Part shown: piece after piece, positions 2,384 to 12,199 of the stretch | How positions within the stretch are numbered: the first letter of the stretch is position 1 | Layout: each line of letters starts with the position of its first letter | Sequence record: MW057919.1 | DNA length: 64,000 nucleotides | Strand: one strand, 5' to 3' | Translations under genes and position numbers: made by a program | The notes under the pieces: generated by a model | Told to the model about the DNA's origin: nothing | Database searches by the model: none | Seen by the model: only the letters and a program-made list of their open reading frames with translations

Positions 2384-3554
2384 ACTAGGTAAACGTGAAA
2401 TTGATCTAACCCTATTAGGGCATACTGGTTTAGATCCTTGGTATGGCACTACCTCATCTGCACGGGGTGCTATGTTTGTAACACATATTGGCCAGGCACC
2501 AGAAGTAAATGGAAATGAATCGCGTTATTTCCTAACGGGTGCTGAATTAGAGTATGCCAAGTATACACATGATGTTCGTTTTCCTGAGGATTGTCGTGTA
2601 CTACATGTTCTTAGAAAATATCCAACGGGTATTGGTAAAGACAGTATTAGATCTAACCCGGTAACAACTATTATCTACGAAAACTATTTTGACAAATATA
2701 AAACCATTGGTGTCTTACATGTTCCCGAGTACATGAGTCATCACCAAGACTTTGGTTATGAACTTGTAAAGAATCGAGAAGTGTGGGAAACCATTGCCCC
2801 AAATGAAATGTTCTCTAAAGACACAGTGATTGCACAGTCTGGTGCAGTTAAGAAAGACGGTACTTTAGGGATGGGTGTTAATGCTAATGTTGTATTCCTA
2901 TCTGCCGCTGGTACCATTGAAGATGGATTCGTAGCTAATAAGAATTTCCTTAAAAGGATGATGCCAACTAGTTATAGCACGGCTGTAGCTAATGCTGGTA
3001 GGAAAGCTTTCTTCTTAAACATGTATGGCGATGATAAGGTCTATAAACCATTCCCAGACATTGGCGATGTTATCCGACCAGATGGTGTAATCTTCGCCAT
3101 CCGTGACCATGATGATGATCTAGCTCCTGCCGAGATGACTCCTAGGGCACTTCGTACACTAGATAGAACTTTCGATAGAGCTGTTATTGGCACACCTGGT
3201 GCGAAGGTTATTGATATTGATATTTGGCGTGATGAGCGTGTAAATCCATCCCCTACTCCAACAGGAATGGATGCACAACTAGTTAAATATCATACTCATC
3301 TTAGCAGTTATTATCGAGAACTATTAAAGATCTATCGTGGTCTATTAGCACGTCGTAAAGATGATCTACATATCACTGAGGAATTTGAACGTCTTATTGT
3401 AACTGCACAGATGTTCCTACCTCAACCTGATAATGTCCGTAAACTATCTCGATTCTATCGACTAGACCCACTAGATGAATGGCGAGTCGAAGTAACTTAC
3501 AAAGCCCAAAAGATGCCTGCTGGTGCTTTCAAGATGACTGATTTTCATGGTGGT
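2376..3554 (+). CDS. gp71-73: Non-virion RNA polymerase beta-like subunit (C-terminal half), exon 1
   Basis: Starts MAELGKR with GGTGA RBS; ends AGAFKMTDFHGG, matching the beta 'GDKxxxRHGxKG' motif that is completed by exon 2; spliced product 700 aa. Confidence 0.92.
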
Positions 3555-9436: not shown

Positions 9437-9580
9437 ATGCAAGTACGAATTGAGGTAATCAATAGTGAGGGCAATCTGGATATCGAAGAACGGGTTGATA
9501 TCCGCCCAATGAAGGGGTTAACGGCCTGGATGGTCGCTCTAGCTATCAAAGGTCTTGTAGCTAGCTTTGCACGTAAGTAA
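9437..9580 (+). CDS. 47-aa peptide with C-terminal hydrophobic/amphipathic helix
   Basis: AAGGAG RBS 9425-9430; MQVRIEVINSEGNLDIEERVDIRPMKGLTAWMVALAIKGLVASFARK; bounded by hairpins at 9345-9376 and 9592-9613; not in the ORF track. Confidence 0.65.
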   Translation: MQVRIEVINSEGNLDIEERVDIRPMKGLTAWMVALAIKGLVASFARK

Positions 9581-9630
9581 GGCGACATAAACCCCTCTCC
9601 ATGTGGAGAGGGGCCTGTCTTTATTTTTTT

Positions 9631-10128
9631 TTATTTAGTTAACGGCTTGTTTAATTCATTTAACTGGTTATTGTTATTAACAGCTTCATTATGGGTAATA
9701 TTTCTACATAATTCAATTATGTATTCTACCTCAGAATAAGCTAATTCAAAGAATTCAGTTAATGACATATTAGATAAGCTACCTACTTTATACTTGAAGA
9801 AATCTCTAGTCAGTCTCCTTCTCAACCCACCTTCGATAAAGTCCTCTTTAGGATTTACCTTGTTTAACCACATGGGTCCGTTTTCTGGTGAACCGATATC
9901 GTAATCAAGTAGATATGCTTCTCTTGTTAAACGTGCTGCTGTAGACGGTCTTACTGCCCCTACTGTCGATAATAGTCTATCCAAGTGTGTATCATCTTCA
10001 GTTAACTTATCATAACCAAAGTTCGGATGTAGGATGTGGCCACTATCTTCCTTGAAGGTGGCCTCAAGACGACTATATCTCAGATCATTAACTACACCAT
10101 CCGGTTTGACTTCGAGGCCGCCAAAGTA
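9631..10128 (-). CDS. Start-less frame, probably the -1 frameshift extension of the gp77-like protein (chaperone 'T'-like / T4 gp51-like segment)
   Basis: Frame open from 10146 to TAA 9633 with no ATG/GTG/TTG until TTG 9984; overlaps the upstream gene in its -1 frame across T TTT TTT; C-terminal MSLTEFFELAYSEVEYIIEL resembles short chaperone C-terminal modules. Confidence 0.7.
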   Translation of the reverse strand, partial: YFGGLEVKPDGVVNDLRYSRLEATFKEDSGHILHPNFGYDKLTEDDTHLDRLLSTVGAVRPSTAARLTREAYLLDYDIGSPENGPMWLNKVNPKEDFIEGGLRRRLTRDFFKYKVGSLSNMSLTEFFELAYSEVEYIIELCRNITHNEAVNNNNQLNELNKPLTK

Positions 10129-10134
10129 AAAAAA
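10057..10134 (-). other. Candidate -1 programmed ribosomal frameshift signal
   Basis: Heptamer T TTT TTT (10134-10128), spacer ACTTT, then GGCGGCCTCGAAG (10122-10110) pairing with CTTGAGGCCACC (10068-10057). Confidence 0.7.
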
Positions 10135-11693
10135 GTTGACAGCATGTCAATAGGAATTAGGTGTGGGAAACGTTCTTTAAATTTAGTAGCGGCAGGTGAC
10201 TCACATACTGGACAATTCCAACTTGTAATTGCAATCATGCCAATTAGTTGTGAATCAATGAAGTTACTTACCGCATTAATAAAGCGGTCATTATATTCTG
10301 GTGTGGATAGAATATTAGTTAAGAACTTTTCAATGGTTTCACGATTAGTGGTTGCAGTACGAATATTGTCTTCAGAACTTTCACCATCGTCATCTTCACG
10401 TACTTTAATTTCTTTAACAAAATGTGAGAACTGACGAGCAATAGAGATCTTTTGTAAACGAGCAATATACTGAGAACGTTGCGGTCCATCAACTGGTTCA
10501 TTAAAACTACCTTGAGTCATATCGATAATTGAGTTAATCCAACTATCACCAGACTCTCGGCGCTCAGCAATTGTGCACATCTCAAGAACGACACCAACGT
10601 CACCAAACATTTCAGTTACTTGAGTTTCAATACGGAATCCTTCTTTATAAGTCTTAAGATCAGATTCGGTACATGCATTAAACTTACGTGCAATATATTT
10701 CTTTTGTTCTTCTGAGAATGCCAGTAGATCATATTGAACAAGCGTTGACATATTAAGTTTCGCTGTTTCAATATGGTTACATGTATTGGCATCTGCAATG
10801 CACGGATAACTGTAATTAAATCCATCTGGATACATAGTCGCCGCTAGTGCATGATGTAAGAATGGTTCATCAGCTACTGAGATAACATGCTCTAGATCAG
10901 TTGGGGTGTTGAACTTATAGTTGGATTGAATAACACATGCAAGTGCTAAACTACTAACCATGTTAAGTAACACAGCTGCCATGTTCGAGAACAGCATACC
11001 TTTTGATTCAGCGCCTAGCCGAATCTTTAATTGCGCTAGACGTGCTTGTAGGGCAGCTACTTCAGTACCAGTAGGTGCACGTAGTTTTACCCAAATACCT
11101 GAATGAGGTAAGAAAGTATCATATGGCGTACCGATGTTAGCTTTACGTGTTAGGAAAACTAGAGTTTCGTCATCGGTCATTTTACGACCATTGGTATTAA
11201 ATACAGGGCGGCCAGGTCGAATGATCTTTTCACCATAAGGAATTTCACTAGACCATTCAGAGCCTTCTCGGGCAGTTGCACCAATTGGTGCATCTTCAAC
11301 AATGGAGTGAGCCAAACCTTCCAGAATAGCAGCTGTCCACTTTACACCATCACTGGTGTCATCTACTTTATTATCAGCAAATGCTTTAAATAGTTCTTTA
11401 TTGTGTTCCAGGAAATTATAAACAGTCTGGGGGTTCTCACGTAGTAAAGTAAGAATACTGACACTGTCTTTAATAGCCGGTTCAGAAGCATCCCGAATAT
11501 TTCCAGTTTTAGCATTACGTGGAATACGTAGTTTAATTTCTTTTTGATCAGGAACGAAAGGTGGTGTTTCCACCTCATCATTATTTTCAATACTAGAGTC
11601 AGGATCGTGTTGCGCATTGATCTCATCAATTTGATCTAGTAAATTCTCTTCTGAAGTATCATCATACTCATTATCGAAGTCAGCAGTAGCCAT
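10092..11693 (-). CDS. gp77-equivalent; putative T4 gp26-like baseplate-hub/tail assembly chaperone
   Basis: 533 aa; VKLRAPTGTE...YSYPCIADANTCNH and WNCPVCESP Cys pairs resemble hub-assembly proteins. Family call is inference. Confidence 0.7.
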   Translation of the reverse strand: MATADFDNEYDDTSEENLLDQIDEINAQHDPDSSIENNDEVETPPFVPDQKEIKLRIPRNAKTGNIRDASEPAIKDSVSILTLLRENPQTVYNFLEHNKELFKAFADNKVDDTSDGVKWTAAILEGLAHSIVEDAPIGATAREGSEWSSEIPYGEKIIRPGRPVFNTNGRKMTDDETLVFLTRKANIGTPYDTFLPHSGIWVKLRAPTGTEVAALQARLAQLKIRLGAESKGMLFSNMAAVLLNMVSSLALACVIQSNYKFNTPTDLEHVISVADEPFLHHALAATMYPDGFNYSYPCIADANTCNHIETAKLNMSTLVQYDLLAFSEEQKKYIARKFNACTESDLKTYKEGFRIETQVTEMFGDVGVVLEMCTIAERRESGDSWINSIIDMTQGSFNEPVDGPQRSQYIARLQKISIARQFSHFVKEIKVREDDDGESSEDNIRTATTNRETIEKFLTNILSTPEYNDRFINAVSNFIDSQLIGMIAITSWNCPVCESPAATKFKERFPHLIPIDMLSTFFTLAASKSNRMV

Positions 11694-11704: not shown

Positions 11705-12199
11705 TTATTGTTGAATTAGTTTTTCGTCCCAACCAGCTTCTCGAAGAGTGCCGATCATCGCTAGGATTACACCATCAATACCGCGTTCAATAGCGCCTTC
11801 AATACCAGTGTATTTAGTGACAAGTTCACTGATGAGTTTTAGTTCATCTTCATTATTTGCTGGACCAGCCTTACCTTGATGTTGTGCATATAGGACACTG
11901 ATAATTTTAGTTAATCGATTAAGATCAGCAATAACTGTTTGTAGATTCTTTTGGAATCCAGTAGGATCAGATAACGTCGGAATGATTTCATTGATCTTAT
12001 TAATAACTGGATTAATGAATACTTCAGTTTGTAGAATACGCTTACCTACAGAGCCTGCTAGTACATTGACAACATCCCAACCATCACGGTTAAGAATATG
12101 ATCAGCTGCGGCAGCTGATGCTCCAACTGCACGTTCAAATAGACGTAGAGTCTTTTCCTGTTCTTTAGTTAGAGTTGGTTCTTTAGCTTTATTTGACAT
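11705..12199 (-). CDS. Hypothetical protein (gp78 position)
   Basis: 164-aa ORF, co-oriented and closely spaced with the gp77-like gene. Confidence 0.8.
   Translation of the reverse strand: MSNKAKEPTLTKEQEKTLRLFERAVGASAAAADHILNRDGWDVVNVLAGSVGKRILQTEVFINPVINKINEIIPTLSDPTGFQKNLQTVIADLNRLTKIISVLYAQHQGKAGPANNEDELKLISELVTKYTGIEGAIERGIDGVILAMIGTLREAGWDEKLIQQ

Follow-up and report, generated by a model that had tools for sequence, protein, structure and literature searches.

The locus described here raises the question of whether a single phage gene gives rise to one protein or to two. It lies in a 64,000-nucleotide (nt) stretch of sequence record MW057919.1, hereafter the window, which was identified as Pseudomonas phage vB_PaeM_kmuB (100% identical), a phiKZ-like phage. 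On the minus strand of the window, the homologue of phiKZ gene PHIKZ077, whose product is gp77, stops shortly after a run of seven T, and from this run onwards the -1 frame is open for a further 165 codons. A reading of this DNA made from the sequence alone (the sequence-only reading) had proposed that ribosomes slip back at the run, giving a 687-amino acid (aa) protein beside the 533-aa product. Our comparative evidence strongly supports this proposal, and we regard a -1 programmed ribosomal frameshift at the gp77 heptamer, yielding a short and a long form of a putative assembly chaperone, as the likely and best explanation of the locus. The argument turns on the following features.

10092..11693, minus strand: 0-frame open reading frame (ORF), the PHIKZ077 (gp77) homologue and putative short form, 533 aa, which matches phrog_4585
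10128..10134, minus strand: slippery heptamer T_TTT_TTT, in the 0 frame, coding for the invariant residues Phe521 and Phe522 (F521, F522)
10092..10127, minus strand: 0-frame tail past the slip site, 11 codons and a TAG stop (10094-10092), overlapping the -1 frame
9631..10128, minus strand: -1 frame extension, 165 codons and a TAA stop (9633-9631)

The slippery site and its open -1 frame

In the 0 frame, the minus strand reads ACT TTT TTT ACT; the T run occupies 10134-10128 and the TAG comes 11 sense codons later, so that T_TTT_TTT stands in frame near the gp77 stop, where the sequence-only reading had placed it. That reading had also described a -1 frame open over 10146-9631 with no start for 54 codons, and this is what we find: the frame is open from 10146 to its TAA, and its first ATG, GTG or TTG is the TTG at 9984, 54 codons from the frame opening and 48 past the slip point. 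The lengths it had derived (522 + 165 = 687 aa beside 533 aa) are right as well. Across both strands of the window, T_TTT_TTY heptamers occur 26 times, and a single one of them, the gp77 site, lies in frame within an ORF that has at least 100 open codons upstream. Being the sole case of its kind, the gp77 site is beyond chance. The in-frame heptamer is this rare (1 of 26) despite the 36% guanine-plus-cytosine (GC) content of the genome, and T_TTT_TTY heptamers seem to be avoided in coding frames.

The T run is not a sequencing error: an alignment through the site was obtained for every one of the 47 phiKZ-like records. With a 126-base query, 44 of them matched over its full length in exactly 126 bases and three over 123 bases in 123, and the T7 run is present in all six records that were read directly. 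Identity of the kmuB region to phiKZ-like genomes is 97.6-97.9% for the 29 others that were listed and lies in the 95-99% band for all remaining records.

According to the mechanism that we propose, one messenger RNA (mRNA) of the gp77 gene would give two proteins. Most ribosomes would read through U_UUU_UUU and stop 11 codons on, producing the 533-aa form. A minority would slip back by one base, with the two phenylalanine transfer RNAs (tRNA-Phe) in the P and A sites re-pairing with UUU UUU, and would read 165 further codons in the -1 frame; the resulting 687-aa form would have an extra domain at its C-terminus. The downstream ORF would have no initiation site of its own. We infer that the slippage takes place on the ribosome, that the ratio of the forms favours the short one, and that both forms act in hub or tail assembly without entering the virion.

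The comparison with relatives covered 13 loci from named phages, 71 from IMG/VR and one Logan contig, in which the Phe521-Phe522 column was located by profile alignment; 47 representatives were drawn from them, whose -1 products are less than 70% identical to one another. N_TTT_TTY stands at the site in 83 of 84 loci, over gp77 identities from 23% to 100% and in phages of Pseudomonas, Xanthomonas, Ralstonia, Erwinia, Serratia, Salmonella and Vibrio, so that the site is retained throughout the nucleus-forming jumbo phages. Once past it, the -1 frame of each of the 82 complete loci has 149-180 codons before a stop. Heptamer and frame phase, which the sequence-only reading had singled out for a check in relatives, are therefore retained: rather than having a proper start for the downstream gene and losing the heptamer, the orthologues keep the heptamer and have scattered starts. 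The two Phe are among just 11 invariant columns of the gp77 alignment. The first is encoded by TTT in 46 of the 47 representatives, where the Phe codon usage of the same gene would predict 15.1, and the base before this TTT is T in 37 of them. In the Xoo-sp14-like phages (GC 58%), the TTT at the site is the sole TTT among the 16-17 Phe codons of the gene. The gp77 homologue of the Bacillus jumbo phage vB_BspM_AgentSmith carries GTT TTT TTA (T_TTT_TTA) with a -1 ORF of about 165 codons. This homologue (locus L086:1922-4100) is annotated as 'putative baseplate hub assembly protein', and of its -1 ORF only the last 78 codons are annotated.

The openness of the -1 frame is specific to the segment that begins at the site. 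Over the gene body, 7.9% of the -1-frame codons are stops, yet the interval from the site to a conserved H..FG motif is open in all 47 representatives; within one tail-length upstream of the site the -1 frame is stopped in 25 of the 47, and within the tail downstream (8-44 codons of 0 frame after the site in relatives) in none. The -1 products of 46 of the 47 match phrog_12109 and thus form one family, and tblastn matches to the -1 product begin at its residue 1 in PhiPA3, PA1C, Psa21 and Phabio. The position of the first canonical start in the -1 frame varies widely (-30 to +136 codons, counted from the site); no ATG, GTG or TTG precedes the H..FG motif in 23 of the 47, and some representatives lack one for 100-136 of about 160 codons. 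Annotation of the downstream gene is correspondingly inconsistent, its start being a TTG, a CTG, a GTG, an ATG 85 codons into the ORF, or the gene being left out; in phiKZ only the last 80 codons of the extension are annotated, as PHIKZ076.4, and in the kmuB record nothing is annotated there. In the Ea35-70-like Erwinia phages (L010:~3020-3185, L089:1832-2380), the -1 frame is open for 46 codons upstream of the site and contains an ATG, at which the Desertfox annotation starts the downstream gene, with a 136-nt overlap with the gp77 homologue.

None of the 21 annotated records that we examined contains a joined coding sequence. Nor is there an in-frame fusion in any of 169 diverse relatives: none reaches the length predicted for the fusion, and in the 166 that have FF the protein ends 8-34 residues after it. 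The lack of a fusion among these relatives fits a need for both forms.

gp77 and the hub chaperones of T4-like phages

Searches with gp77 gave no match by Pfam, by PDB sequence or by PDB fold, and its family comprises 1685 clusters in a scan of 1.84 billion proteins. An AlphaFold model of gp77 (predicted local distance difference test, pLDDT, 78.7; predicted template modelling score, pTM, 0.81) matched its own family in BFVD and, more weakly (E-value, E, 4e-4 to 5e-2; target-normalised template modelling score, TM, 0.5-0.58), proteins of 225-285 aa named baseplate hub subunit or hub assembly protein. BFVD matches of 686-687 aa also exist for this model, and judged from phrog_8054 profile positions they are most simply explained as N-terminal extensions. 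The likeness to hub assembly proteins centres on the following segments of the gene.

10182..11018, minus strand: T4 gp26-like (PF12322-like) module, gp77 residues 226-504, from hhalign and BFVD
10779..10802, minus strand: first conserved Cys pair, C298 and C305, nearly invariant and collinear with the first Cys pair of gp26
10203..10214, minus strand: second Cys pair, CxxC, C494 and C497, aligned with the C-terminal CPEC of T4 gp26

In a local hhalign comparison, an alignment of 169 gp77-family members matched that of T4 gp26 with a probability of 80.9% (E 1.2e-5) over 170 columns, covering gp26 residues 21-197 of 208; with a shallow gp77 alignment the same comparison gave 27%. The C-terminus of T4 gp26 has CPEC, twelve residues and then FF four residues from the stop, the same layout as in gp77. 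PF12322 itself is matched by T4 gp26, T4 gp51 and the proteins of three T4-like phages discussed below (OLIVR5, S-WAM1 and LPCS28), and has no match in gp77 or nine relatives even at E <= 10. From the local hhalign result and the fold matches, gp77 is a probable distant homologue of T4 gp26, enlarged by about 225 N-terminal residues and by insertions. Four nearly invariant cysteines (C298, C305, C494 and C497) are common to gp77 and T4 gp26 in position, and they suggest a shared metal-binding site.

The sequence-only reading had called the two products a G/GT-like chaperone pair. The chaperone part of this idea survives in that gp77 is probably a gp26 homologue, but membership of the G/GT tail-assembly-chaperone family does not: gp77 is about four times larger, its gene lies elsewhere than beside the tube or tape-measure genes, and the search for a family match gave no Pfam hit and one weak phrog_3792 match (E 0.024) in one of ten members. 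Leiman et al. count both gp26 and gp51 among the hub-assembly chaperones (PMC3004832), and by distant homology and analogy the two gp77 forms may serve as a chaperone pair in hub or tail assembly. As a hint only that both products may be absent from the virion, the record of 201phi2-1 marks gp138 as found by mass spectrometry and does not so mark gp135 and gp136.

T4 itself offers a second protein that resembles a long form. Its gp51 and gp26 are paralogues (hhalign probability 97.9%, E 6.5e-13), each with a match to PF12322, and gp51 has about 60 further aa as a tail at its C-terminus. Genes 26 and 51 of T4 lie at L090:4803-6229, and gene 26 also has an annotated internal product, 26'. The FF codons of T4 gp26 are TTC TTT. 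In five T4-like phages outside Tevenvirinae, the FF of the gp26-like gene is encoded as T_TTT_TTC, one or two codons before the stop, and a -1 ORF follows.

L098:1866-2057: -1 ORF in Agrobacterium phage OLIVR5
L099:1863-2063: -1 ORF in Synechococcus phage S-WAM1
L100:1866-2042: -1 ORF in Cronobacter phage LPCS28
L101:~895-1092: -1 ORF in Synechococcus phage S-SM2
L102:~895-1074: -1 ORF in Vibrio phage K491

After the heptamer, the -1 frame measures 57-65 codons in OLIVR5, S-WAM1 and LPCS28 and runs on similarly in S-SM2 and K491. The extensions of the first three match phrog_634, 'baseplate hub assembly catalyst', which is the family of the gp51 tail. With the S-WAM1 extension as query, 545 phage records were matched, mostly of cyanophages and vibriophages; among the 30 matches listed, most start at residue 1 and about two-thirds occur under both hub and catalyst annotations. 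In S-SM2 and K491 an ATG follows 2-6 codons after the site, and because an ATG often lies a few codons past it, a separate small protein stays a live rival in the T4-like phages.

The corresponding evidence for the -1 product of the phiKZ relatives is as follows. Neither PDB sequence nor PDB fold searches returned anything, no likeness to T4 gp25 or to the whole of gp51 was found, none of the 47 chimallivirus -1 products matched phrog_634, and a single-sequence structure model (pLDDT 38) was unusable. An alignment of the -1 product compared by hhalign with the -1 extensions of OLIVR5, S-WAM1 and LPCS28 gave a probability of 48% (E 1.8e-4) over 40 columns; this is no more than suggestive of a resemblance to the gp51-type tail in the following segment.

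9673..9792, minus strand: -1 product residues 113-152, possible likeness to the gp51-type C-terminal tail, from hhalign

T4 may encode as two genes, 26 and 51, what other phages encode as one gene and a frameshift. A wider proposal, which we consider possible though short of probable, is that an ancient recoding signal, the frameshift at the C-terminal FF codons of hub chaperone genes of the PF12322 type, is common to nucleus-forming jumbo phages and many T4-like phages (cyanophages, vibriophages and others), that it is the functional counterpart of G/GT there, and that T4 swapped it for the paralogous genes 26 and 51. A 2016 review of recoding describes the G-T frameshift as conserved in long-tailed phages 'except T4' (PMC5009743).

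Stimulatory RNA, counter-evidence and rival explanations

Programmed -1 frameshift signals of the bacterial type can include a conserved or covarying hairpin or pseudoknot 5-9 nt downstream of the slip site, and the sequence-only reading had described a stem of about 12 base pairs downstream of the heptamer.

10057..10122, minus strand: phiKZ-specific stem (arms 10122-10110 and 10068-10057), 5 nt past the heptamer

The 5-nt spacing is as it had stated, but the stem has about 10 pairs with one interruption and not a clean 12. In phiKZ it is more stable than 97% of equal-sized windows of its own gene (z = -1.97), and against shuffles the whole region has z = -0.86. A self-fold of the 3' arm, which had been suggested to tune efficiency, was rejected, as it loses a pair in phiKZ itself. 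The covariation that the earlier reading had looked to in relatives is lacking. We rejected the stem as a conserved stimulator: it occurs in phiKZ-like genomes only, an equivalent is absent in a relative with 54% protein identity (L085), and stability and covariation across the family, given below, show no sign of it. An Rfam search returned no relevant element. The stem may still have a local role within phiKZ. Because there is no conserved RNA stimulator, frameshifting efficiency is probably low, as in lambda G/GT. In E. coli, U_UU.U_UU.Y is among the efficient -1 heptamers, shifting above background with no stimulator present, and the tetramers U_UUC and U_UUU rank directly after A_AAG (PMC4066793).

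Several observations weigh against a frameshift at this site, or against the role given to its products. Over the 47 representatives, the stability of the region downstream has a mean z of +0.15, and the sole structure that RNAalifold gave for 14 Pseudomonas-phage relatives was a 4-bp hairpin lacking compensatory pairs. Ten of the 47 representatives have a base other than T ahead of the run, so that re-pairing in the P site would be imperfect there; GTT TTT occurs at one locus and TTT TTG at three. In 8 of the 47, an in-frame start lies upstream of the site within the open -1 frame, and the annotators of Desertfox used one of these. T4 gp26 has FF near its C-terminus at the corresponding position in non-slippery codons, and the FF may therefore be constrained by the protein itself. 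Proteomics detected Churi gp256, a gp77 homologue, among 15 hypothetical proteins early in infection (PMC11849849), which fits a role in tail assembly poorly. Finally, our joint statistics treat lineages as independent, which they are not, and their significance is therefore overstated; the pattern of site and frame is still uniform over very deep divergence.

The same 687-aa fusion would arise by ordinary translation if the phage RNA polymerase stuttered on the T run and added one U, an extra mRNA base giving the identical change of frame. T runs at the site range from T5 to T8 and reach T7 or T8 in many distant relatives, and these phages use unusual multisubunit RNA polymerases, both of which speak for such transcriptional slippage. 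UUUUUUU is, moreover, under-represented in genes, partly for a slippage reason (PMC4066793). Several clades have only T5 or T6 (ATA TTT TTC, GAG TTT TTC, ACG TTT TTT), and the conserved element is a frame-specific T_TTY at the A site, kept even in the GTT TTT variant, both of which point away from the polymerase. Known transcriptional slippage genes use runs of about nine, well above the T5-T8 found here. On balance we think slippage during transcription unlikely. An equally improbable account holds that there are two separate genes, the downstream ORF having translation of its own, which either re-initiates past the gp77 stop or uses a non-canonical start, with the T run serving only to encode a Phe-Phe that the protein structure needs. 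It draws on the separate annotation of downstream genes in database records, on the non-slippery FF of T4 gp26, on the early ATG of S-SM2 and K491 and on the upstream starts of the eight chimallivirus representatives. It is at odds with the inconsistent annotated starts, with the 23 representatives that have no canonical start before the conserved motif, and with a -1 frame whose open stretch reaches back as far as the T run, which has no stop from the run to the end of the 0 frame and frequently has one shortly before the run; nor does the protein sequence explain the bias towards TTT.

Homopolymer runs are prone to insertions and deletions, and an ancestral ORF of about 690 aa could in principle have been split by a one-base change in the run, or appear split through an assembly error. 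The length constancy across 47 independently sequenced phiKZ-like genomes (44 of them without a gap over 126 bases), the persistence of the split layout at 23% protein identity and the lack of any fused relative among 169 make this explanation extremely improbable. The analysis shows the heptamer with its frame and its conservation, a -1 frame that is both open and conserved, and the probable homology with gp26.

Surroundings, known counterparts and implications

The gp77 gene is flanked by genes for PHIKZ078, the head protein gp79, the virion RNA polymerase gp80 and the helicase gp75. It is not beside the tube or tape-measure genes, in agreement with the sequence-only reading, which had placed the pair away from the tape-measure gene.

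11705..12199, minus strand: PHIKZ078 homologue, upstream on the same strand, adjoining the gp77 gene in every relative examined
9592..9613, strand not assigned: GC-rich hairpin with a terminator-like score in either orientation, separating the -1 ORF from a convergent small ORF

The convergent ORF (window 9437-9580, plus strand; 47 aa) is the homologue of PHIKZ076.3. The Churi record labels such an ORF 'baseplate hub protein', an odd label for a 47-aa ORF beside a gp26-like gene, and the name may have been mis-transferred.

Among known systems, lambda gpG/gpGT is similar in arrangement: the gene of an assembly chaperone has a heptamer for a -1 slip close to its 3' end, with a 0-frame stop soon after, a long form made of the N-terminal body and a C-terminal domain, no strong stimulator, and an arrangement kept despite low sequence similarity (PMC5009743). 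The gp77 pair differs from it in having no sequence or family relation, a short form of 533 aa versus about 140, a place other than between the tube and tape-measure genes, and a U-rich heptamer instead of G_GGA_AAG. In our reading, the proposed gp77 frameshift works like that of lambda G/GT but is not homologous to it. T4 gp26/gp51 (PF12322, T4_baseplate) is close in the protein: gp77 residues 226-504 align with almost all of gp26, the Cys pairs are collinear, FF lies near the C-terminus, and a short form stands beside a long one, in gp77 a putative one, that is extended at its C-terminus. It differs in that the two forms come from paralogous genes, that the FF codons are not slippery, that gp77, with its extra residues, falls below the Pfam threshold, and that the 165-aa extension is much longer than the gp51 tail and weakly similar to it. 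In dnaX of E. coli, the shifted frame stops almost at once, so that the frameshift product is the shorter one, and strong stimulators lie upstream and downstream of the site. Otherwise dnaX tau/gamma resembles gp77 in outline, with a -1 frameshift on a homopolymeric heptamer and two forms sharing their N-terminus (PMC7412058). OrfA-OrfAB of IS3/IS911 likewise has two overlapping ORFs fused by a -1 slip, with U_UU.U_UU.C among the motifs used (PMC4066793); these are transposase genes, usually with a hairpin or pseudoknot stimulator.

Among the papers searched, none describes frameshifting in phiKZ or other jumbo phages, or in genes named 'baseplate hub assembly catalyst'; the matches to 'gp77' concern the numbering of other phages and were set aside. 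If the frameshift takes place as we propose, the annotation of every phiKZ-like and chimallivirus genome would be missing one protein, namely the long form (about 687 aa), and the downstream ORF would be one that is currently annotated with arbitrary starts or left out. The gp77 family would gain its first functional lead, as a baseplate-hub assembly factor. The rule by which tail-assembly chaperones come as a short form and a frameshift-extended long form would then extend to a second, unrelated chaperone family, and would offer an explanation for the apparent lack of a tail-chaperone frameshift in T4.

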